The position numbers and the translations under genes are program-made. A stretch of DNA of 64,000 bases from Stegostoma tigrinum (taxonomy: Eukaryota), in contig NC_081365.1 in the NCBI RefSeq assembly GCF_030684315.1, positions 39,027,830 through 39,091,829 of the forward strand. Reading direction: 5' to 3'. This document shows, piece by piece, positions 19,331 to 64,000 of this stretch; within the stretch, counting starts at the first letter, position 1, and every line of letters starts with the position of its first letter. Below the pieces are notes generated by a model. It was not told where the DNA came from, searched no databases, and saw only the letters and a program-made list of their open reading frames with translations.

Positions 19331-19800
19331 ACACTTAGCCCACTTAATGTTTTTGAGAAGATTTGTAGCTTGGGCTAGGTAACATCATCAGTGTGCCTCT
19401 GGTGAAGCGTTGGTGTTCTGTCCCATCTGTTATGTATATGCATCGGTTTGCTGGGGTGGTTGGTATTAATTCTGGTTTTGTTTCTCAGTGGTTTGTACAC
19501 AGGGTCAAATTCAATGTGTTTGTTGATGGAGTTCCAATTGGAATACCAGGTCTCCAGGAATTTGAGCCAAACAGAGACACGCCAGGGAATTTCTGTACAG
19601 CCTGTACACAAACCACTCAGAAACAAAACTGGAAGTAACACCAACCACCCCAGCAAACCGAGGCGTATAAATAACAATAGGGACAGAACACTGACGCTTC
19701 ACCAGAGGCACACTTGATGATGTTACCTAGCACGGTGATGAAAGGCTTGCAGCCAAACCCAACAGCTCGGTAAGCATGTCCACAATCACATTTAGCCCAC
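19331..19800. mobile_element. Penelope-like element (family A relative), inverted-arm insertion with ORF C-terminus
   Basis: Minus-strand peptide KFLETWYSNWNSINKHIEFDPVYKPLRNKT (PLE GIY-YIG C-terminal region) and inverted arms. Decayed hammerhead CTGATGATGTTACCTAG. The 13-bp direct repeat ACACTTAGCCCAC/ACATTTAGCCCAC lies at 19331-19343 and 19788-19800. Confidence 0.75.
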
Positions 19801-20180: not shown

Positions 20181-21179
20181 AGATGAGAGTCACCTGCTTT
20201 TCAGCCCTTCTGCTAATGAACTCAGTTTCTGTGGATCTACTCTGCTCAGGCATCTCATGATTAAATAGCTGCTCAAAAATCTGTCTTCATACCTCCCGAG
20301 TAGACCAGCCCCCCGCTTTACCATCAGTTTGTCACCCTGGAACCATTCTGGTAAACCTTTTCTGTATCCTCTCCACACCGTCATAACTTTCCTGACGTGT
20401 AATTCCCCGAATTAGATATAGTACTCCAGTTGAGGTGGAATTGGTGATTTATAAAAGTTTCTTGTGGAATCTTTCTTTTCTAGTCAATACATTGGCAAAT
20501 ATTTGAAACACCTATTAGTGACTTTCTCAGCTCTCGTGCTATCTCAAACAATTTGCACCCTCTCCCCCTGAAATGTATCCTTTGGAAATGTATCCTTTAT
20601 TTTATACTTCCTTTTCTCATGTTCAGACCATAATGTATAATTCCATATCTCCCAACAGTAAATTCATCTGTCACATGTCAGTCTAATCTACCAGCTTGTC
20701 TATGCTTTCTGCAGGTTTATCATTGCCCTCTTCACAGTTCACTATTATATATTTTGAATAATATGCAAAATTTAAAATAGTGTCCTACACACACGAATTT
20801 AGCTAGCGAGTTTTGAGAAGATTTGTAGCTCAGGTTGAGGTTCTGGATGTGAGTTTGCTCGCTGAGCTGGAAGGTTAGTTTTCAGACATTTCGTCACTTT
20901 TTTTTAATATTGAAAAAATATACTTTATTCATAGAATGTACAAAAAATAAAACATTTATACGCCTACCCAGTCATGCAAGCCACTCCGGGTTACCCGGGG
21001 CTACATACACCAACTAAAGGAAAAAAAAAACAAAACAGAGAAAAAAAAACAAAGCAAAGAAACCGCCCCGGCAGTCGTCACCCCGCACAGTCCCATTTGG
21101 CCCCCTGACCAGTTGGGGAAGGCACCAGCTGGGCCCAGTTACCAGATAGGGCCCTTTTTTCTATTCTGGACGAGGGGTT

Positions 21180-24100
21180 TCATACCGTGGTCTTTCCCCA
21201 CCACACCTTGGCGGTGGCTGCCCCAAGCTTCAGCGCGTCCCTCAGCACGTAGTCCTGGACCTTGGAGTGCGCCAGTCTGCAACACTCGGTCGGGGTCAGT
21301 TCTTTCAGCTGGCAGACCAGCAAGTTGCGGGCAGACCAAAGAGCGTCTTTCACCGCATTGATGGTCCTCCAGGTGCAGTTGATGTTGGTCTCGGTGTGCG
21401 TCCCGGGAAACAGCCCGTAGAGCACGGAGTCCCGCGTCACGGAGCTGCTCGGGACGAACCTCGACAAACACCACTGCATCCCCTTCCAGACCTCCTGCGC
21501 ATAGGCACACTCCAGAAGGAGGTGATCGACAGTCTCGTCCCCCCCGCAGCCACCTCGAGGGCAGCGTGCGGTGGTGCAGAGATTCCGGGCATGCATAAAG
21601 GATCTCACTGGCAGAGCCCCTCTCACCGCCAGCCAAGCAATGTCCTTGTGCTTGTTTGAAAGTTCTGGAGATGAGGCATTCTGCCAAACGACTTTGGCAG
21701 TCTGCGTGGGGAACCACACGACGGGATCCACCCTCTCCTTTTCCTGAAGGGTCTTAAGGATATTACGTGCTGACCACTGCCTGACAGCCTTGTGGTCAAA
21801 GGTGTTTCCTTTCAAAATTTCTCCACGAAGGACAGGTTGTACGGGACGGACCAAATACTCGGAGCGTTCCACGACAACAAGACCAGGCCCATCCTTCGCA
21901 ACACCGGGGACAGGTAGAACCTCAGTAAGTAGTGACACTTGGTGTTTGCGTACAGAGGATCTACGCACAGCTTGATGCAGCCACACACAAAGGTAGCCGT
22001 CAGGGCGAGGGTGGCGTTCGATACGCCCTTTCCCCCATTTCCCAGGTCTTTGTACATGGTGTCTCTGCGGACCCGGTCCATCCTCGACCCCCAAATGAAG
22101 TGGACGATGGCCCGGGTGACCGCAGTGGCGCAGGTCCAGGTAATAGGCCAGGCCTGCGCCACATACAACAGTACCAAAAGCCCCTCGCACCTGACAACCA
22201 GGTTCTTACCCGCGATGGAGAGGGACCGGAGCGTCCACCTGCCCAGCTTCTGCTTCAATTTGGAGATACGCTCCTCCCAAGTCTTAGTGCATGCCCCAGC
22301 TCCACCAAACCAAACATCCAGCACCTTCAGGTAGTCTGTCCTGACAGTGAAGGGGATGAAGGAGCGGTCGTCCCAGTTCCCGAAGAACATGACCTCGCTC
22401 TTACCCCTATTGACTTTGGCACCCGAGGCCAGTTCAAACTGGCCGCAGATGTCCAACAGCCTACTCACCGACCGACGATCGGTGCTGAAGACGGCGACAT
22501 CATCCATGTACAGGGAGGTCTTGACCTGAAGGCCTCCGCTGCCTGGGATAGTCACGCCCTTCAGGCTCACGTCCTTCCTGATGGAGGCGGCGAAGGGCTC
22601 CACACAGCACACGAACAAGGCAGGAGAAAGCGGGCAGCCCTGCCTAACTCCAGATCTAACAGGAAAACTGTCTGATTCCCACCCGTTGATCGAGACTGCG
22701 CTAACGATGTTGGCGTAGAGCAGCCGGATCCAATTGCGGATGCCCTCCCCGAACCCCAATTTGGAGAGGACCTCCCTCATGTAAGCATGAGAGACCCTGT
22801 CGAAGGCCTTCTCCTGGTCCAGGCTGACGAGGCAGGTGTCCACCCGCCTGTCCTGTACGTAGGCGATCGTATCCCTGATGAGCGCAAGGCTCTCAGCGAT
22901 CTTCCTGCCCGGCACAGCACAGGTTTGGTCAGGGTGAATCACCGACTCCAGGACAGACCTGACCCGGTTGGCAATGACCTTGGCCAGGATTTTGTAGTCC
23001 ACGTTCAAAAGTGAAATGGGACGCCAATTCTTAATTTCTTCCCTCTCCCCCTTCCTCTTGTAAATGAGGGTGATGATGCCCTTCCTCATGGACTTGCACA
23101 TTTCCCCTGCCCAAAGCGCACTATCGTACACCTCCAGCAGGTCCTGGCCGACCAGGCCCCACAGAGCAGAATACAGCTCGACCGGTAAGCCATCACTTCC
23201 GGGAGTCCTATTCCTCTGCAAGGACATGAGGGCTCTGGCCAGCTCGTCCAGGGATATCGGCCGGTCCAGCCACTCCCTCGTGCCGTCGTCTAAGACCTCC
23301 GTGATAGACGACAGGAACGACTCGGAGGCCATGCTGTCCGTGGGCTTCGTGTCGTACAGTCCGGCATAGAAGTTCTGATGATCCTCAAAACGTCGGGCCG
23401 AGACGACGTCACCGAGCCGTCGTCCTCCTTCAGCCGGCTAAGCACAGAGCACTCTTTGTGCACCTTCTGAAAGAAGAAACGCAAGCACGTCTCGTCCTGC
23501 TCCATGGAGCGGACCCTGGACCGGAAGATTATCCTGGAGGCCTCCGCGGCGAAGAGCGAGGCTAGCTGGCCCCTCACCTCGCGGAGGTCCTCCGTGACAT
23601 CAACCCCCATCAACTGCAGAAGGAGCAGGTTCTGCACCCTTTTCTGGAGTCGCGACAGCTTTCCCCGCCTCTCTCTTGCCTTCTGAACACCCTTGAGGAC
23701 AAAGAACCTCTTGATGTTCTCCTTCACCGTCTCCCACCAGTCGCCTGGAGACTCAAAGAGGGGTTTCACGGTTCTCCAACCGGTGTACTCCGTCTTAAGC
23801 TCCTCGACGTTCTCTGGGGTCAACAGAGTCGTGTTGAGCTTCCACGTCCCCTTGCCGGCCGGCTGGTCGTCCTGTAAGTGACAGTCGGCCAACAGGAGGC
23901 AGTGGTCAGAGAAGAACACCGGCTCGACACCAGTGGATCTGACCGAGAACGTCCGTGACACAAACAGGAAGTCTATCCTTGAGCGAATAGACCCGTCTGG
24001 CCGCGACCAGGTGTACCTCTGCTGCGCTCCGTCTGCAGGGGTGCTGAAGACGTCGAGCAGCTTGGCGTCCTTCACCGTGCCCATCAGGAATCTGGATGTG

Positions 24101-24599
24101 ACGTCCAGTTGAATCCCCCCACCCGCTGTCCCCACGCCGGATCTTCCATCTGCATCAATGATGTAGTTGAAGTCTCCGCCTAGGATGACCGGCCTGGACG
24201 TAGCCAGCAGGGGGGGAAGCCGCTGCAGGACGTCCAACCGCTCACTCCGTACCACTGGGGCGTACACGTTGATCAGCCTCAGGGGAGCATTCCTGTAGGT
24301 GATGTCAGCCACTAGGAGGCGCCCCCCCCCACCACCTCCTGAACTTGAGAGATGGTGAAGTTGTGCCCCCGCAGCAGAATAGCCAGGCCCAAGGAGCGAC
24401 AGTCGTTACCCCCCGACCAGATCGAAGGCCCACAGGTCCAGGCGCCGGACCATTTCCCGTACCTGCCGAGGTGCGGTATCCCGCACTCCTGCAGAAACAG
24501 GAGGTCCGCCTTGATGGTGGTCAGGTAGGCCAACGTGGACACACATCTCGCGGTTGACTTGACGCTGCGCACATTAATGCTCGCAATTCGTACCCCCAT
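21180..24599 (-). pseudogene. Tx1 copy L ORF2 (APE endonuclease, RT YMDD, C-terminal CCHC), frameshifted
   Basis: Split among ORFs 24312-24635, 23290-24312, 21812-23332 and 21180-22190. Motifs GGDFN, SRIDFL, FSDH, GVRQGCPLSP, YMDD and CPRGGCGGDETVDHLLLEC. Confidence 0.9.
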
Positions 24600-26037
24600 T
24601 GTGGGCAGTGACCGCAGTACCCTCCCCAAGTCCAAGGTCCAGCCCCTCCATCTGTCCCTTCATGCCCATTGCCCGGGCTAACTGCTAGACGCTTTCTGGG
24701 CTCAGGAAACCGTCTGTGCTGCCTTCCGGGTGGCATCCCCCCGCCAGGGGTGCGGAGGCAGGAGGGTCCGGCTCCGGATCAGGCTGGGGACGTGCTGTTT
24801 CCTCCTTCCCGCCTGGACGTTCCGGGGGGCCCTCCAGTGCTCCAGCGGCACTTGACTGGGTGTCGGAGTGAGCCTCAGGACGCCTCCCGTCACCTGGAAG
24901 CGGGGTGCTGCTTTCCTTCCCCCTCGAGACCTTTAACTTCTGCTTCGGTTGGGCCCTCTCCGAATCCTCCTCGTCAGAGGAGCTCTTATAGCCCCCCTGT
25001 AGCTGCCTCTTCCCTCCTGATTGTTGTGGTTCCTGGGCCCGTCGACGCACCTTCCTCCTCGCTTTCCGGACTGTAGTCCACTCCCCTGGGTTGCCTGTCG
25101 CCGCCTCCATTGGCTCCGGGTTGTCGGGGGGGATCGGAGCCTGCAGGGGTGCTTTGCTGGCCTCGGGCCCATCCTGCAGGGCTGGGCCCTCCTGCACGGC
25201 CTGGCCCTCCTGCACATTAGTGGGGTCCTTGCTGGGCCCTGGTGCCTTCCTCTCCTCCGGGGGGGCTGGCCCCGCATTTCCCCTGCCGGCGACCTGGGCG
25301 TAGGTGGTACCCCGCCGCGGGCATGCCCTATAGAAGTGGCCCGCTTCCCCGCAAAGGTTGCAGCTTCTCTCTCGTGGGCAATCCTTTGCCAGGTGTCCCT
25401 CCTCCCTGCAGTTCCTGCAGATGGTGACTTTGCAGTCGGCCGCCATGTGACCTGACCTACCACAGGCATGGCAGACTTTAGGTTGCCCTGCATAGGTCAG
25501 GTAGCCCCTGCTCCCGCCGATCGCGAAGCTGGACGGTGGGTGTGCGACATTCCCGTCTGCGCCCATCCTCAGCGTCACCTTGACCTGCCTCTTACTCATC
25601 CAGATGCCAAAGGGGTCCACGATGTCAGTTAGGTCCCCTTCCACCTTCACATACCTTCCGAGGAAGGTCAGGACATCAACTGCTGGCACATGCGGGTTGT
25701 ACATGTGTACAGTCACCATACGGCTCCTCTGTGCTGGCATCACAAACAGTGGGACAGCGGTCAATACAGAGAGGGGGCCCTCACCTCCTTTCTCCTTGAA
25801 AACCTCCAGGAAGCGCTCGCAAAGCTTGGCACTCCGGAAGGTCACATCGTAAAAACCCCCTCTGGGGAAATCCTGCAGGCGGTAAATGTCCGCAGCAGCA
25901 AACCCGCAACAGTCCAACAGGACCCTCTTCACGAAGAAGGTGCGGTCCACAGGTGCACCTTCATCCACCTTCTTTACAGAAACACGGATGGTGTTCCGGA
26001 CCCCCTGACCTGGGGCACGAGCACTTGCCGCAGCCAT
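24574..26037 (-). pseudogene. Tx1 copy L ORF1 (nucleic-acid binding, 3x CCHC; ZCCHC3-like)
   Basis: ATG at 26037. Knuckles CHACGRSGHMAADC, CRNCREEGHLAKDC and CNLCGEAGHFYRAC. CAG>TAG stop at 24685; the ancestral TAA is at 24574. Confidence 0.85.
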
Positions 26038-26236
26038 CGTTGCAGGTTGGCTGCTCCCCTGAACCAGCGTTAGGCCGAAGCCAGCATTAAGATCCACTGG
26101 TCGCGAGGGTGCACAGCCAACCCGACGTCCTCCTTTCACCTCCAACACAGCACTCTCGTCCTCTCGGTCCACAAGAGAGTGGGTCTTTATTGTGTTTGAG
26201 ATGTAAGCTGGTTCACTGAGCTGTAAGGTTTGTCCC

Positions 26237-26520
26237 CAGATGTTTCGTCACCATTCCAGGTAACATCAACAGTGAGCCTCCAACAAAGCGCTGGTGTTAT
26301 GTCCCGCTTTCTATTTATCTGGTTAGGTTTGCTTGGGTTGGTGATGTCATTTCCTGTTCTTTTTCTCAGAGGAAAAGAACAGGAAATGACATCACCAACA
26401 CAGGAAATGACATCACCAACCCAAGGAAACCTAACCAGATAAATAGAAAGCTGGACATAACACCAGTACTTTGTCGGAGGCTCACTGTTGATGTTACCTA
26501 GAATGGTGATGAAACGTCTG
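26237..26520. mobile_element. Central fold-back of PLE family A pLTR (ORF C-terminus plus two hammerhead motifs, both with core CTGTTGA)
   Basis: Near-identical to the empty element at 43433-43712. Encodes PLRKRTGNDITNPSKPNQINRKRD, homologous to the PLE C-terminus at 19375-19717. A 21-nt tandem duplication lies at 26380-26420. Confidence 0.85.
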
Positions 26521-26719
26521 GGAACAAACCGGCAAGCTCAGTGAACCAGCTTACATCTCGAACACAATAAAGACCCACTCTCTTGTGGACTGAGAGGAGG
26601 AGAGTGCAGTCTTGGAGGTGAAAGGAGGACGTCGGGTTGGCTGTGCACCCTTGCGACCAGTGGATCTTAATGCTGGCTTCGGCCTAACGCTGGTTCAGGG
26701 GAGCAGCCAACCTGCAACG

Positions 26720-28174
26720 ATGGCTGCGGCAAGTGCTCGTGCCCCAGGTCAGGGGGTCCGGAACACCATCCGTGTTTCCGTAAAGAAGGTGGATGAAGGT
26801 GCACCTGTGGACCGCACCTTCTTCGTGAAGAGGGTCCTGTTGGACTGTTGTGGGTTCGCTGCTGCGGACATTTACTGCCTGCAGGATTTCCCCGGAGGGG
26901 GTTTTTACGATGTGACCTTCCGGAGTGCCAAGCTTTGCGAGCGCTTCCTGGAGGTTTTCAAGGAGAAAGGAGGTGAGGGCCCCCTCTCTGTATTGACCGC
27001 TGTCCCACTGTTTGTGATGCCAGCACAGAGGAGCCGTATGGTGACTGTACACATGTACAACCCGCATGTGCCAGCAGTTGATGTCCTGACCTTCCTCGGA
27101 AGGTATGTGAAGGTGCAAGGGGACCTAACTGACATCGTGGACCCCTTTGGCATCTGGACGAGTAAGAGGCAGGTCAAGGTGACGCTGAGGATGGGCGCAG
27201 ACGGGAATGTCGCACACCCACCGTCCAGCTTCGCGATCGGCGGGAGCAGGGGCTACCTGACCTATGCAGGGCAACCTAAAGTCTGCCATGCCTGTGGTAG
27301 GTCAGGTCACATGGCGGCCGACTGCAAAATCACCATCTGCAGGGAGGAGGGACACCTTGCAAAGGATTGCCCACGAGAGAGAAGCTGCAACCTTTGCGGG
27401 GAAGCGGGCCACTTCTATAGGGTATGCCCGCGGCGGGGTACCACCTACGCCCAGGTCGCCGGCAGGGGTAATGCGGGGCCAGCCCCCCCGGAGGAGAGGA
27501 AGGCACCAGGGCCCAGCAAGGACCCCACTAATGTACAGGAGGGCCAGGCCGTGCAGGAGGGCCCAGCCCTGCAGGATGGGCCCGAGGCCAGCAAAGCACC
27601 CCTGCAGGCTCCGATCCCCCCCGACAACCCGGAGCCAATGGAGGCGGCGGCAGGCAACCCAGGGGAGTGGACTACAGTCCGGAAAGTGAGGAGGAAGGTG
27701 CGTCGACGGGCCCAGGAACCGCAACAATCAGGAGGGAAGAGGCAGCTACAGGGGGGCTATAAGAGCTCCTCTGACGAGGAGGATTCGGAGAGGGCCCACC
27801 CGAAGCAGAAGTTAAAGGTCTCGAGGGGGAAGGAAAGCAGCACCCCGCTTCCAGGTGACGGGAGGCGTCCTGAGGCTCACTCCGACACCCAGTCAAGTGC
27901 CGCTGGAGCACTGGAGGGCCCCCCGGAACTTCCAGGCGGGAAGGAGGAAACAGCACGTCCCCAGCCTGACCCGGAGCCGGACCCTCCTGCCTCCGCACCC
28001 CTGGCGGGGGGATGCCACCCGGAAGGCAGCACGGACGGTTTCCTGAGCCCAGAGAGCGTCCAGCAGTTAGCCCGGGCAATGGGCATGAAGGGACAGATGG
28101 AGGGGCTGGACCTTGGACCTGGGGAGGGTACTGCGGTCACTGCCCACAATGGGGGTACGAATTGCGAGCATTAA
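26720..28174 (+). CDS. Tx1 copy R ORF1 (484 aa, CCHC knuckles; second knuckle has a 3-codon deletion)
   Basis: Open frame from ATG 26720 (MAAASARAPG) to TAA 28174. Reads ITICREEGH versus VTICRNCREEGH in copy L. Confidence 0.85.
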   Translation: MAAASARAPGQGVRNTIRVSVKKVDEGAPVDRTFFVKRVLLDCCGFAAADIYCLQDFPGGGFYDVTFRSAKLCERFLEVFKEKGGEGPLSVLTAVPLFVMPAQRSRMVTVHMYNPHVPAVDVLTFLGRYVKVQGDLTDIVDPFGIWTSKRQVKVTLRMGADGNVAHPPSSFAIGGSRGYLTYAGQPKVCHACGRSGHMAADCKITICREEGHLAKDCPRERSCNLCGEAGHFYRVCPRRGTTYAQVAGRGNAGPAPPEERKAPGPSKDPTNVQEGQAVQEGPALQDGPEASKAPLQAPIPPDNPEPMEAAAGNPGEWTTVRKVRRKVRRRAQEPQQSGGKRQLQGGYKSSSDEEDSERAHPKQKLKVSRGKESSTPLPGDGRRPEAHSDTQSSAAGALEGPPELPGGKEETARPQPDPEPDPPASAPLAGGCHPEGSTDGFLSPESVQQLARAMGMKGQMEGLDLGPGEGTAVTAHNGGTNCEH

Positions 28175-31100
28175 TGTGCGCAGCGTCAAGTCAACCGCGA
28201 GATGTGTGTCCACGTTGGCCTACCTGACCACCATCAAGGCGGACCTCCTGTTTCTGCAGGAGTGCGGGATACCGCACCTCGGCAGGTACGGGAAACGGTC
28301 CGGCGCCTGGACCTGTGGGCCTTCGATCTGGTCGGGGGGTAACGACTGTCGCTCCTCGGGCCTGGCTATTCTGCTGCGGGGGCACAACTTCACCATCTCT
28401 CAAGTTCAGGAGGTGGTGGGGGGGTGCCTCCTAGTGGCTGACGTCACCTACAGGAACGCTCCCCTGAGGCTGATCAACGTGTACGCCCCAGTGGTACGGA
28501 GTGAGCGGTTGGACGTCCTGCAGCGGCTTCCACCCCTGCTGGCTACGTCCAGGCCGGTCATCCTAGGCGGAGACTTCAACTGCATCATTGATGCAGATGG
28601 AAGATCCGGCGTGGGGACAGCGGGTGGGGGGATTCAACTGGACGTCACGTCCAGATTCCTGATGGGCACGGTGAAGGACGCCAAGCTGCTCGACGTCTTC
28701 AGCACCCCTGCAGACGGAGCGCAGCAGAGGTACACCTGGTCGCGGCCAGACGGGTCTATCCGCTCAAGGATAGACTTCCTGTTTGTGTCACGGACGTTCT
28801 CGGTCAGATCCACCGGTGTCGAGCCGGTGTTCTTCTCTGACCACTGCCTCCTGTTGGCCGACTGTCACTTACAGGACGACCAGCCGGCCGGCAAGGGGAC
28901 GTGGAAGCTCAACACGACTCTGTTGACCCCAGAGAACGTCGAGGAGCTTAAGAGGGAGTACGCCGGTTGGAGAGCCGTGAAACCCCTCTTTGAGTCTCCA
29001 GGCGACTGGTGGCAGATGAAGGAGAACATCAAGAGGTTCTTTGTCCGCAAGGGTGCTCAGAAGGCAAGAGAGAGGCGGGGAAAGCTGTCGCGACTCCAGA
29101 AAAGGGTGCAGAACCTGCTCCTTCTGCAGTTGATGGGGGTCGATGTCACGGAGGACCTCCGCGAGGTGAGGGGCCAGCAAGCCTCGCTCTTCGCCGTGAA
29201 GGCCTCCAGGATAATCTTCCGGTCCAGGGTCCGCTCTGTGGAGCAGGACGAGACGTGCTCGCGTTTCTTCTTTCAGAAGGTGCACAAAGAGAGCTCTGTG
29301 CTTAGCCGGCTGAAGGAGGACGACGGCTCGGTGACGTCGTCTCGGCCCGACGTTTTGAGGATCATCAGATCCTTCTATGCCGGACTGTACGACACGAAGC
29401 CCACGGACAGCATGGCCTCCGAGTCGTTCCTGTCGTCTATCACGGAGGTCTTAGACGACGGCACGAGGGAGTGGCTGGACCGGCCGATATCCCTGGACGA
29501 GCTGGCCAGAGCCCTCAAGTCCTTGCAGAGGAATAGGACTCCCGGAAGCGGCCGCTTACCGGTCGAGCTGTATTCTGCTCTGTGGGGCCTGGTCGGCCAG
29601 GACCTGCTGGAGGTGTACGATAGTGCGCTTCGGGCAGGGGAAATGTGCAAGTCCATGAGGAAGGGCATCATCATCCTCATTTACAAGAGGAAGGGGGAGA
29701 GGGAAGAAATTAAGAATTGGCGTCCCATTTCACTTTTGAACGTGGACTACAAAATCCTGGCCAAGGTCATTGCCAACCGGGTCAGGTCTGTCCTGGAGTC
29801 GGTGATTCACCCTGACCAAACCTGTGCTGTGCCGGGCAGGAAGATCGCTGAGAGCCTCGCGCTCATCAGGGATACGATCGCCTACGTACAGGACAGGCGG
29901 GTGGACACCTGCCTCGTCAGCCTGGACCAGGAGACGGCCTTCGACAGGGTCTCTCATGCTTACATGAGGGACGTCCTCTCCAAATTAGGGTTCGGGGAGG
30001 GCATCCGCAATTGGATCCGGCTGCTTTACGCCAACATCGTTAGCGCAGTCTCGATCAACGGGTGGGAATCAGACAGTTTTCCTGTTAGATCTGGAGTCAG
30101 GCAGGGCTGCCCGCTCTCTCCTGCCTTGTTTGTGTGCTGTGTGGAGCCCTTCGCCGCCTCCATCAGGAAGGACGTGAGCCTGAAGGGCGTGACTATCCCA
30201 GGCAGCGGAGGCCTTCAGGTCAAGACCTCCCTGTACATGGATGATGTCACCGTCTTCTGCCCCGATCGTCGGTCGGTGAGTAGGCTGTTGGACATCTGCG
30301 GCCAGTTTGAACTGGCCTTGGGTGCCAAAGTCAATAGGGGTAAGAGCGAGGTCATGTTCTTCGGGAACTGGGACGACCGCTCCTTCATCCCCTTCACTGT
30401 CAGGACAGACTACCTGAAGGTGCTGGGTGTTTGGTTTGGTGGAGCTGGGCCATCCACTAAGACTTGGGAGAAGCGTATCGCCAAATTGAAGCAGAAGCTG
30501 GGCAGGTGGATGCTCCGGTCCCTCTCCATCGTGGGTAAGAACCTAGTTGTCATGTGCGAGGGGCTTTCGGTACTGTTGTATGTGGCGCAGGCCTGGCCTA
30601 TTCCCTGGACCTGCGCCGCTGCGGTCACCCGGGCCATCTTCCACTTCATTTGGGGGTCGAGGATGGACCGGGTCCGCAGGAACACCATGTACAAAGACCT
30701 GGGAAATGGGGGAAAGGGCGTACCGAACGCCACCCTCGCCCTGACGGCTACCTTTGTGTGTGGCTGCATCAAGCTGTGCGTCGATCCTCAGTACGCAAAC
30801 ACCAAGTGTCACTACTTACTGAGGTTCTACCTGTCCCCGGTGTTGCAAAGGATGGGCCTGGCCTCGTTGCCGCGGAACGCTCCGAGTAGTTGGACCGTTC
30901 CGTACCACCTGTCCTTCGTGGAGAAATTTTTGAAAGGAAACACCTTTGACCACAAGGCCGTCAGGCAGTGGTCAGCACATAGTATCCTCAGGACCCTTCG
31001 GGAAAAGGAGAGGGTGGATCCCGTCGTGTGGTTCCCCACGCAGACTGCCAAAGTCGTTTGCCAGAATGCCTCATCTCCAGAACTTTCAAACAAGCACGAA

Positions 31101-31566
31101 GACATTGCTTGGCTGGCGGTGAGAGGGGCTCTGCCAGTGAGATCCTTTATGCATGCCCGGAATCTCTGCACCACCGCACGCTGCCCTCGAGGTGGCTGCG
31201 GGGGGGACGAGACTGTTGATCACCTCCTTCTGGAGTGTGCCTATGCGCAGGAGGTCTGGAGGGGGATGCAGTGGTATTTGTCGAGGTTCGTCCCGAGCAG
31301 CTCTGTGACACGGGACTCCATGCTCTACGGGCTGTTTCCGGGGACGCACACCGAGACCAACATCAACTGCGCCTGGAGGACCATCAATGCGGTGAAAGAC
31401 GCTCTTTGGTCTGCCCGCAACTTGCTGGTCTGCCAGCTGAAAGAACTGACCCCCGACCGAGTGTTGCAGACTGGCGCACTCCAAGGTCCAGGGCTACGTG
31501 CTGAGGGACGCGCTAAAGCTTGGGGCAGCCGCCGCCAAGGCGCGGTGGGGAAAGACCACCGTATGA
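28149..31566 (+). CDS. Tx1 copy R ORF2 (APE-RT-CCHC), open until a +1 frameshift at the C-run 31450-31454
   Basis: MGVRIASINVRSV start overlaps the ORF1 end by 26 nt. APE and RT (YMDD) motifs present. The ancestral end KTTV* (TGA 31564-31566) is seen by comparison with copy L. Confidence 0.9.
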
Positions 31567-32225
31567 GCCCCCTCGTCCAGGAAAGGGAAAAGAATCCTAT
31601 CTGGTAACTGGGCCCAGCTGGCGCCTTCCCCAACTGGTCAGGGGGCCAACTGGGACTGTGCGGGGTGACGACTGCCGGGGCGGTTTCTTTGCTTTGTTTT
31701 TTTTTTCCTTTAGTTGGTGTACGTACCCCTGGGTAACCCGGAGCGGCTTGCATGACTGGGTAGGTGTATAACTGTTTTATTTTTTGTACATTCTATGAAT
31801 AAAGTATATTTTTTCAAATAAAAAAAGATGATGAAACATCTGAAAACTAACCTTCCAGCTCAGCGAGCAAACTCACATCCAGAACTAATTTAGCTTTTCA
31901 ACACAAATCAAGAAAAACAATGGTGCTGACATTTACCCTTGGGAAACACCACTGCTGCCCAGAAAATTAGTATTCACCAGTATTCTGTTTCCTATCATTT
32001 AGTCAAGTTCAAAAGTCTGTCACATCACACTTTATCAAATGCATTTGGATAGCCACATATACCATATCAACTACATTAATCTCATCAACCTCTGTTGTTT
32101 CATCAAAAAACACAATGAAATTAGGCAAAAATATGTTGCCATAAATATTTAATATTATTCATTCATACTTGCATTTTCGTTTAGATTCAATCATGCGCAT
32201 TAAGAGGAAGAAAAAAAAAACTTAC

Positions 32226-33829: not shown

Positions 33830-34027
33830 CGTAGGAACTGCAGATGCTGGAGAATCTGAGATAACAAGATGTAGAGCTGGATGAACATAGCAGGCCAAGC
33901 AGCGCCATAGGAGCAGGAAAGCTGATATTTCGCGCCGAGAGGGTCTAGGCCCGCAACGTCAGCTTTCCTGCTTCTTTGATGCTGCTTCGCCTGCTGTGTT
34001 CATCCAGCTCTACACCTTGTTATCTCC
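33830..34027. mobile_element. PLE family B fold-back terminus
   Basis: GGAACTGCAGATGCTGG arm followed by its reverse complement. Confidence 0.75.
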
Positions 34028-43419: not shown

Positions 43420-43725
43420 CCTCAAAAAAGTTAGCGAGTTTTGAGAAGATTTATAGCTCAGGTTAAGGTTCTGGATGTGAGTTTGCTCGCTGAGCTGGAA
43501 GGTTAGTTTTCAGACGTTTTGTCACCATTCTAGGTAACATCATCAGTGAGCCTCCGACGAAGCGCTGGTGTTATGTCCTGCTTTCTATTTATCTGAAAGT
43601 AGAAAGCGGGACATAACACCAGCGCTTCGTCGGAGGCTCACTGATGATGCTACCTAGGATGGTGATGAAATGTCTGAAAACTAACCTTCCAGCTCAGCGA
43701 GCAAACTCACATCCTCAAAAAAGTT
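43420..43725. mobile_element. PLE family A fold-back pLTR, uninterrupted (empty Tx1 target)
   Basis: Perfect 13-bp TSD CCTCAAAAAAGTT (43420-43432 and 43713-43725), inverted arms, and hammerhead motifs on both strands. Confidence 0.9.
43641..43674 (+). ncRNA. Hammerhead ribozyme motif, PLE family A (slightly decayed)
   Basis: TCA-CTGATGA-T-GCTACC-TAGGAT-GGTGAT-GAAA-TGTC-TGA. The consensus with the opposite arm is CTGATGA T GTTACC TAGAAT GGTGAC GAAA CGTC, with stem I TCA/TGA. Confidence 0.7.
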
Positions 43726-62639: not shown

Positions 62640-64000
62640 AAAGAACATAGAACATTGAACCGTACAGCAAGCCCTTCAGCCCATGATGTTGTGTGGAACT
62701 TTTACCCTAAACCTAAGGTCTATCTAATCTCCACCCTATCTTATACTATCATTCATATGCCTATCTAGTAGCCACCTAAATGCCCCTAATGAGGCCGACT
62801 CCTCTACCCTCTAATGCATTCCATGCCCCTACCATTCTCTGAGTAAAGAATCTACCTCTGATATCTGCCCTATATCTACCTCCACTCACTTTAAAACTAT
62901 GTCCCCTTGTAATAGCTACCTCCACCCTAGGAAAAAGTTTCTGGCTGTCTACTCTATCTATACCTATGATCATTTTATACACCTCCATCAAGTCACCTTC
63001 AAAAGAGAAAAGCCCTAGTTGTCTCAGCCTTTCCTTGTAAGACCTTCCCTCCATTCCAGGCAACATTCTGGTAAATCTCCTCTGCCCCTTTTTCAATTCT
63101 TCCATATCTTTCCTGTAATGAGGCAACCAGAACTGGACACAATACTCCACATGTGGCTGAACCAGGGTTTTGTTAAGCTGGAGCATGACTTCACGGCTCT
63201 TGAACGCAATCTCTCTATTAATGAAAGCTAACACACCATATGCCTTCTTAACAACTCTATCCACCTGGGTGGCATCTTTCAGTGAACAGTGAACCCTGAG
63301 ATCCCTCTGCTCTTCCACACTGCCAAGAATCATTCCGTTAACTCTGTATTCTGCTTTCAATTTTGTCCCTCTAAAATGGAACACCTCACACTTTTCAGGG
63401 TTAACTCCATCTGGCACTTCTCAGCCAAGCTCTGCATCCTATCAATGTCCCTTTGTAACCTGGAACAGCCCTCCGCAATACCACAACTCGACCCACCTTC
63501 GTATTGTCCGTGAACTTACTAATCCACGCTTCCACTCCTACGTCCAAACCATTTACAAAAATCACAAATAGAAGAGAACTCAGAACAGATCCTTGTGGTA
63601 CACCACTCGTAACTGAGCACCATGTTGAATATTTTCTGTCCACTACCACACTTTGTCTTCTAAGGGTCAGCCAATTCTGAATCCAATCTGCCACATTTTC
63701 CCCTATCCCATGCCTCCTTACTTTCTGCATGAGCCAACCATGGGGAACCTTATCAAATGCCTTACTTAAATCCATGTATATCACATCCACTGCTCTACCC
63801 TCATCCATGTGTTTGGTCACTTCTTCAAAGAATTCAGCAAGGTTTGTGAGGCATGATTTACCCCTCACAAATCCATGCTGACTATTACAAATCAAACTAT
63901 GCTCTTCTAAGTGATCATAAATCCTAACTCTAAGAACCCTTTCCAATAATTTGCTCACCACTGACGTAAGACTAATTGGCCTGTAATTCCCAGGGTTATC
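62640..64000 (-). mobile_element. CR1 RT and 3' end, continues beyond the window
   Basis: ORFs 63401-63961 (SQHGF, GVPQGSVL) and 62776-63417; tail GAACATAGAACA at ~62643. Confidence 0.9.

Follow-up and report, generated by a model that had tools for sequence, protein, structure and literature searches.

The 64,000-nucleotide stretch of the shark Stegostoma tigrinum analysed here (contig NC_081365.1, positions 39,027,830 to 39,091,829; "the window" refers to its full length) contains two long interspersed nuclear elements (LINEs) that stand head to head, at 20898-26236 on the minus strand and at 26521-31826 on the plus strand. The segment 26481-26571 is the 5' junction of the plus member. Between the LINEs lie inverted arms (26237-26357 and 26400-26520) that are homologous to a palindrome at 43433-43714; another, at 19375-19776, is a more distant homologue. 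The target is identified from its features as a Poseidon-type Penelope-like element (PLE), and each LINE occupies one arm of a palindromic PLE mini-element, in sense orientation to the minimal hammerhead ribozyme motif of that arm. Two LINE copies and three PLE mini-elements were viewed at the level of single bases; other loci were seen through Logan contigs from four public runs of unspecified library type. Coordinates of the features are collected in Table 1.

By Pfam, open reading frame (ORF) 1 of the plus LINE holds ZCCHC3-type RNA-binding domains and CCHC knuckles, and ORF2 holds an apurinic/apyrimidinic (AP) endonuclease, a reverse transcriptase (RT) and zf-RVT. ORF2 matches human L1 ORF2p at E=2e-72. 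Its closest database proteins are unnamed ones from amphibians (Pleurodeles, Xenopus; 44% identity), and Tx1 is not mentioned in the names of these closest relatives, while the closest database protein to ORF1 is 69% identical. The element is thus assigned to the L1/Tx1 group of LINEs by its domains and the match to L1 ORF2p, not by RT phylogeny. Sequence-specific insertion, a trait of the Tx1 clade, is seen in two independent insertions at one bond. Outside the leader the two copies are 97.4% identical, and within its 43 nucleotides they agree at 37. The LINE has a G+C content of 58-62% in surroundings of about 40%. The family is young, the plus copy having intact ORFs, and contig depth suggests that it is very large.

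The unoccupied mini-element near 43.4 kb shows the 26-kb palindrome as it was before both insertions. Native PLE sequence downstream of the hammerhead is numbered here from R1. Exact copies of the native 43-mer (R1 to R43) lie at 20840-20882(-), 31843-31885(+) and 43468-43510(-), and a copy with three mismatches lies at 43677-43719(+). Long arms end at R78 in two elements, the 43.4-kb element and the 20.8-kb long arm having this terminus in common, and short arms end at R43 and R36-38, so that the tail measures 35-42 nt. At 31881-31885 many contigs pass from the PLE into varied AT-rich flanks, and the exits into AT-rich DNA at 31881-31884 fit the AT-rich target preference of PLE endonucleases. 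The diverged mini-element at 19375-19776 has a core reading CTTGATGA and different sequence downstream, and in its minus arm the stretch between loop 2 and about R52 is deleted. A TATA-like box upstream of the hammerhead core is kept in all four arms at 26 and 43 kb and aligns with TATAAATAA in the diverged relative at 19.66 kb; it is presumed to be a PLE promoter element. The PLE reading frame opens at ATGATG inside the hammerhead core, which places the predicted cut 28 or 31 nt after the ATG, and in the 20.8-kb copy it is uninterrupted across R as far as the terminus. Because this ORF starts in the core, transcript starts must lie upstream and the hammerhead must be transcribed; a start upstream of the core, together with the TATA-like box, positions the LINE for co-transcription. 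The PLE copies recognised in the window are mini-elements only. No ORF with a PLE RT and GIY-YIG domain was recognised in the 64 kb, the sole ORF of at least 200 amino acids outside the LINEs (62776-63417) not having been examined.

The motif in the arms has the family features of a PLE minimal hammerhead, in local copies that appear decayed. It was identified by the published feature list for these ribozymes (PMC4209133) and not by Rfam models, which reported no hammerhead family either at gathering score across the whole window or at E up to 10 across 26100-26660. Rfam matches of a miRNA-like kind on the palindrome were set aside as spurious. A regular-expression scan for an intact CTGATGA...GAAA with a stem II of at least 4 bp likewise returned nothing in the window. 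An extra U follows A9 in all four arms, and stem II has 6 bp (GUUACC/GGUGAC) closed by a G10.1-C11.1 pair, C11.1 being kept in two arms and replaced by U, at a CpG, in the other two. Helix III, a single pair, has the palindrome ACGU in two arms, the plus arm and the minus arm at 43 kb, and reads ACAU or AUGU elsewhere, and a partner motif lies on the opposite strand within a few hundred bases. The conserved core, C3-U4-G5-A6-N7-G8-A9 with G12-A13-A14, is intact in empty-site contigs and mutated in the LINE-adjacent arms. Empty-site contigs of three runs read the intact ...GCTCACTGATGATGTTACCTAGAATGG (loose ends at 31829), with one variant in run X5. The 43-kb element has CTGATGA intact in both arms, with G12A in one and C11.1U plus a loop TG in the other. 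The CpGs of the motif, at C11.1-G12 and in the helix III loop, have decayed differently in each arm (26510-26516, 26241-26246, 43513-43520 and 43661-43667). In a methylated vertebrate genome hammerheads such as these should lose activity fast after insertion.

Target-site duplications at both LINEs measure 14-16 bp, about 15 bp, and the bottom-strand nick falls in the 3' strand of stem II. The dinucleotide TG is common to the native target and the PLE-like leader. Each LINE starts 0-2 nt past the predicted scissile bond, either at the bond itself (a 13-bp duplication) or 2 nt further on (a 15-bp duplication). The first-pass annotation had placed the start 2 nt after the cut; its nearness to the cut stands, but the exact distance does not, since the shared TG allows a start at the cut. 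That annotation had also read an AATAAA after the leader, and the hexamer is there.

The two insertions are independent events at an identical bond. The palindrome has a 9-bp duplication of its own (AATTTAGCT) and unequal arms (R78 versus R43), like the empty 43.4-kb element with its 13-bp duplication. Moreover, an arm-specific C or T is found in both duplication copies of a given LINE, and the LINEs are unlike each other in A tail and leader. That the mirror pair came from a fold-back duplication is ruled out by the R lengths and by the palindrome's own duplication, and the differing A tails and leaders contradict it as well. Each insertion rebuilds the same series, namely PLE upstream region, hammerhead, PLE-like leader and LINE. 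We hold the anatomy of junctions, target and leader as described here with high confidence.

The leader matches the native PLE without gaps and in register at 30 of 43 positions in both LINE copies, a recomputed count that agrees with the one made by hand. The next-best among the 127,916 registers of the window reaches 25/43, and the binomial P is 3e-8. In local alignment the leaders score 27 and 33 against a shuffle mean of 15 (sd 2.3; z 5-8). Past leader position 43, identity to the longer native copy is at chance level (10/37). The leader is covered by 27-35 contig variants per run and is present in a second species (organism B). The proposal that it is a captured piece of an older or related PLE target is thereby upheld by the register match, by both insertions and by contigs of two species, and other family members do carry it, as tens of contig variants in the four runs and the second species attest. 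Both of its boundaries fall on PLE landmarks: it starts at the hammerhead cut and ends at R43. Coincidence of both by accident has a probability of about 1%, a rough product of about 0.1 for each. This double agreement is best explained by descent from a chimeric PLE-LINE RNA, and we consider it highly probable that the leader is a diverged, element-borne copy of PLE origin.

In organism A about three quarters of the contig depth has TT for the GG at 26531-26532, and this majority form is closer to the target; most copies in the two species read TT at these positions. At leader positions 11-14 (26531-26534; 26223-26226) the plus copy has GGCA and the minus copy TTAC, and some contigs have a native-like TTCC. 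CAAACC and GT.A are common to the leader and the 19375-19776 relative but not to the main PLE subfamily, which hints at another PLE subfamily as the source of the leader. A gapped extension of the leader match to about 65 nt against the 19.7-kb relative (CACAAT...CCCACNCTCTTG) was rejected, because its score of 25 is not significant beside a shuffle maximum of 27. Between 26490 and 26543 the ATGs of the core open a 17-codon frame across the junction, which is closed by a leader TGA in both LINEs where the native PLE has CGA. In a chimeric transcript that stays uncut, this frame constitutes an upstream ORF.

The leader differs between the two copies at 6 of 43 positions (14%), against 2.6% elsewhere (P=9e-4), and lies among the densest 1.5% of 43-nt windows for mismatches. 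This density, and the patchy GGCA, TTAC and TTCC polymorphism, would be accounted for if a long duplication were hidden at the junction. The top-strand nick would then lie beyond R43 and the true duplication would be about 58 bp; the left R copy would pair with the leader complement in the complementary DNA (cDNA), and repair, resolving the mismatched duplex, would partly homogenise the leader with its target. However, the leader is only 70-75% like the target, so that homogenisation would be at best rare, and a fully native R beside the LINE body is seen in no copy, among the two copies and the contig fragments. We regard a hidden duplication as very improbable. An earlier suggestion that the leader aids 5' junction formation by homology meets the difficulty that it resembles the downstream and not the upstream flank, and so misfits the simple geometry of target-primed reverse transcription. 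A leader-aided junction needs a top-strand nick beyond R43, of which the patchy 4-nt polymorphism and the raised leader divergence are the sole hint.

At the junction helix I comprises 4 bp (CUCA/UGGG), versus 3 bp (UCA/UGA) in the native sequence. The native RNA and the minus-arm junction are predicted to fold alike, into stem II and a two-part helix I whose proximal part is UCA/UGA or CUCA/UGGG and whose distal part is GGAGG/CCUUC or GAGG/CCUU. A majority-type leader, represented by a 21-nt string of the plus copy with two majority contig letters, keeps a proximal helix I and retains the possible distal pairing GGAGG/CCUUC (-6.9 versus -6.7 kcal/mol).

From these elements a mechanism can be proposed. 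A tail-less PLE copy would once have abutted an ancestral LINE in a chimeric RNA whose 5' end lay at the hammerhead cut, the chimera having arisen either by read-through and cutting or by a jump of the RT onto a cut PLE fragment. In each later cycle the LINE would land about 55 nt downstream of the presumed TATA-driven start of the PLE and be co-transcribed from there. A fraction of the transcripts would be cut by the target hammerhead, dimerised with another PLE hammerhead or helped by PLE protein, to give LINE RNA that starts UG-GGAAC. The two target-derived letters, and possibly the leader, would help to form the uniform 5' junction. Since a type I hammerhead lies upstream of its cut, it would stay behind, and each target would have to provide a fresh ribozyme, a need that would account for the site preference. 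The identical junctions of independent insertions recall R2, in which a ribozyme that cuts upstream of the junction goes with uniform 5' junctions (PMC3774820). We give a probability of roughly 0.27 to the reading that the LINE routinely borrows the promoter and hammerhead of its target, with the leader supplying the helix I partner, and perhaps a contact for PLE protein, and cutting yielding the template. The whole chain from origin through cutting by the hammerhead in the present day is a tentative proposal, and routine trimming of the LINE RNA by the ribozyme is doubtful.

Several observations weigh against borrowed cutting. A complete hammerhead had been reported upstream of the LINE in the first-pass annotation, and its layout is as described, but the core is not intact: both LINE-adjacent cores have A6U (26488 in the plus arm), and CpG decay has produced C11.1U at 26510 in the plus arm and turned the loop CG to CA in the minus arm. 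A fully intact hammerhead is found in none of the four arms of the window (0/4). The claim that the new TGGG restores stem I holds as arithmetic, 4 bp versus 3, but any gain beyond chance does not, given that GG plus the next base ranks 11th of the 64 trinucleotides for helix I extension; the fold z-scores, too, are not significant. Single PLE minimal hammerheads show no self-cleavage and dimers cleave weakly (PMC4209133). The Anolis PLE hammerhead requires PLE protein, in vitro insertion can do without the ribozyme, and RNA-seq shows no reads that end at its cut (PMC11167929). The portion of PLE RNA bound by the Anolis protein reaches well past the 43 nt of the leader. A search of public runs turned up none recorded as RNA, the raw-read runs being bisulfite DNA, and RNA ends are unreadable from contigs. 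An endonuclease aimed at the conserved PLE core with a 13-15-nt stagger would put its top nick near the scissile bond in about 1 of 10 cases by geometry. Two letters of target homology do little to account for a uniform junction, and the GC-rich 5' untranslated region (UTR) of the LINE could contain a promoter.

A rival is co-transcription without cutting, in which a capped chimeric RNA from the PLE promoter keeps the hammerhead and an old PLE-LINE fusion survives in the leader as a neutral fossil. The cDNA end complementary to the upstream target (L plus the duplication) would anneal there and give the uniform junction, and the match to the scissile bond would be set by the position of the endonuclease nick. 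Ribozyme activity is then not needed, in keeping with PLE hammerheads that are weak or depend on protein (PMC4209133, PMC11167929) and with local cores that carry mutations. The long upstream homology accounts for identical junctions better than 2 nt would, with a precedent in R2 (PMC3774820), and the 17-codon upstream ORF, closed by the leader TGA in both copies, is compatible with re-initiation at ORF1. What co-transcription alone leaves unexplained is why an inherited, diverged sequence starts exactly at the hammerhead cut, and why the leader retains helix I partners. We judge it rather unlikely.

If instead the LINE is transcribed from a promoter in its own GC-rich 5' UTR, capped RNA would begin at the first G of the leader, the hammerhead would be a conserved landing pad, and the leader would be a fossil or a part of the promoter. 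The PLE would serve as a safe multicopy target, as repeats do for other Tx1-clade elements. The contrast in G+C between LINE and genome agrees with this, as does the greater variation of the leader than of the body between copies. The leading G residues of the leader are compatible with cap-templated additions such as occur at L1 5' ends. Tx1-clade LINEs also often target repeats or other transposons that have no link to a ribozyme (PMC4494074). On the other side stand the two leader boundaries, both on PLE landmarks, and the two insertions, both sense to the hammerhead and with identical junctions though independent. An own promoter seems unlikely to be the explanation.

The shark LINE resembles R2 and other LINEs with ribozymes like that of hepatitis delta virus (HDV) (Eickbush 2010/2013, PMC3774820; Ruminski 2011) in being a site-specific LINE with a multicopy target and presumed co-transcription. 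As in R2, a self-cleaving motif stands at the 5' junction, the predicted cut lies at or a few nucleotides upstream of it so that target letters would remain on the RNA, and junctions are uniform. R2, however, encodes its own ribozyme, and this lies on the downstream side of the cut and moves with the RNA, whereas in the shark the hammerhead is part of the target and precedes its cut. The shark LINE supplies the helix I partner only; core and stem II are in the target, upstream of the duplication, rather than in the LINE's own 5' UTR. R2 also combines an HDV-like ribozyme with a restriction-like endonuclease, whereas the shark LINE combines a hammerhead, whose cleavage is predicted only, with an AP endonuclease.

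Target-specific Tx1-clade LINEs include Tx1L in the piggyBac element Tx1D, Tx1-Mar in Mariner-N4_AMi and Keno in U2 genes, and LTR elements are targets too (PMC4494074). The shark LINE is like them in its L1/Tx1 AP endonuclease, the CCHC knuckles of ORF1 and precise insertion into a repeated element, and unlike them in targeting a PLE hammerhead and carrying a leader from the downstream flank of its target. U6-L1 chimeras and SINEU heads (PMC4494074), 5' additions made to LINE-mobilised RNAs through template switching or 5' transduction, likewise have a foreign RNA-derived segment as a heritable retroposon 5' end; the shark leader differs in that its source is the very target of the element, and it stands in register with the site of insertion.

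The target itself resembles the PLE minimal hammerheads described by Cervera and de la Pena 2014 (PMC4209133) and Frangieh 2024 (PMC11167929). These have CUGAUGA...GAAA, an extra nucleotide after A9, G10.1-C11.1, a 6-bp helix II, a short helix I and an ACGU helix III, and the likeness extends to opposite-strand motif pairs 100-700 bp apart, an ORF start in the core and termini 35-42 nt apart. Unlike them, the shark motif has a 5.3-kb LINE inserted after its cut, LINE sequence takes the place of its native helix I partner, and its local copies bear mutations. PAc, the Anolis Poseidon element, has an ORF that opens at stem II and a hammerhead cut 26 nt past the start codon; RT starts internally at two sites to give an optional 30-40-bp tail, and the promoter presumably lies in the pseudo-long terminal repeat (PMC11167929). 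The shark PLE is alike in its ORF start in the core, a cut 28 or 31 nt after the ATG, two termini and an optional tail. In the literature covered, which left out most subscription journals and Repbase Reports, we found nothing that joins Tx1, Penelope and a hammerhead as target, and no LINE whose leader derives from the target and lines up in register with the insertion point. New here are the coincidence of the leader end with the tail-less terminus of the PLE, the likeness in build between the shark PLE and PAc, the two-part helix I and the contig view of the family.

Past the LINE pair, at 33884-34000, the window also holds a 57-nt inverted repeat, 81% complementary, with a spacing of 3 nt.

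Table 1. Coordinates in the window of the LINE pair, its PLE targets and the junction features
Feature	Position	Strand	Remarks
Plus LINE, full-length, L1/Tx1-type	26521..31826	+	ORF1 26720-28174; ORF2 within 28113-31607; both open
3' end of plus LINE	31826 (last position)	+	short A tail
Minus LINE	20898..26236	-	leader 26236-26194; ORF1 stop at codon 451; ORF2 fragmented
LINE leader	26521..26563	+	probable diverged PLE copy, from hammerhead cut to tail-less PLE terminus
AATAAA hexamer	26566-26571	+	directly after leader
PLE minimal type I hammerhead, plus arm	26481..26522	+	feature list of PMC4209133; helix I 3' strand UGGG, its GG from the LINE
Helix I 5' strand CTCA	26481-26484	+
Core CTGTTGA	26485-26491	+	then extra T, 26492
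Stem II GTTACC / GGTGAT	26493-26498 / 26505-26510	+
GAAA; loop CG; TC	26511-26514; 26515-26516; 26517-26518	+
Predicted cut	26518^26519	+	then TG 26519-26520; LINE-specific sequence from 26521
Mirror hammerhead, minus arm	26234..26276	-	predicted cut 26239^26238; core CTGTTGA, loop CA
5' target-site duplication, plus LINE	26506..26520	+	GTGATGAAACGTCTG; repeated at 31827/31829-31842; last TG ambiguous
3' target-site duplication, plus LINE	31827..31842	+	GATGATGAAACATCTG; arm-specific T (GATGAAA) common to 5' copy
5' target-site duplication, minus LINE	26237..26251	-	GTGACGAAACATCTG; arm-specific C
3' target-site duplication, minus LINE	20883-20897	-	GTGACGAAATGTCTG; arm-specific C
Plus arm of PLE mini-element, upstream of LINE	26400..26520	+	about 89% identity over 80 nt to empty copy 43597-43676
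TATA-like box	26439-26446	+	ATAAATAG; about 47 nt upstream of hammerhead core
Native PLE R1-R43, short arm	31843..31885	+	after hammerhead; exact 43-mer; ends without tail
Native PLE R1-R78, long arm	20805..20882	-	includes 35-nt tail; ends ...CTCGCT beside duplication 20796-20804
9-bp duplication of 26-kb palindrome	31887-31895		AATTTAGCT; one T after R43; repeats 20796-20804
Unoccupied palindromic PLE mini-element	43433..43714	both arms	empty-site reference; minus arm to R78, plus arm to R36-38
13-bp duplication flanking unoccupied mini-element	43420-43432 / 43713-43725		CCTCAAAAAAGTT
Diverged third palindromic PLE mini-element	19375-19776		about 72-86% identity to others, by segment; box TATAAATAA

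In the one PLE that has been reconstituted, the hammerhead proved dispensable for insertion and left no RNA ends at its cut (PMC11167929). A LINE sequence that runs from the scissile bond to a PLE terminus would be a natural record that such cut RNA existed. The known targets of Tx1-type LINEs are extended to the ribozyme of another retroelement, and a large young family with intact ORFs in its plus copy makes the question of trimming testable. The arrangement also outlines how a LINE, whose upstream sequence is lost with each jump, could acquire a promoter and a defined 5' end anew at every site. If the proposed processing is true, this would be the first hammerhead-processed LINE, and the inherited 5' end at the scissile bond would give the first in vivo sign of cleavage by a PLE minimal hammerhead.

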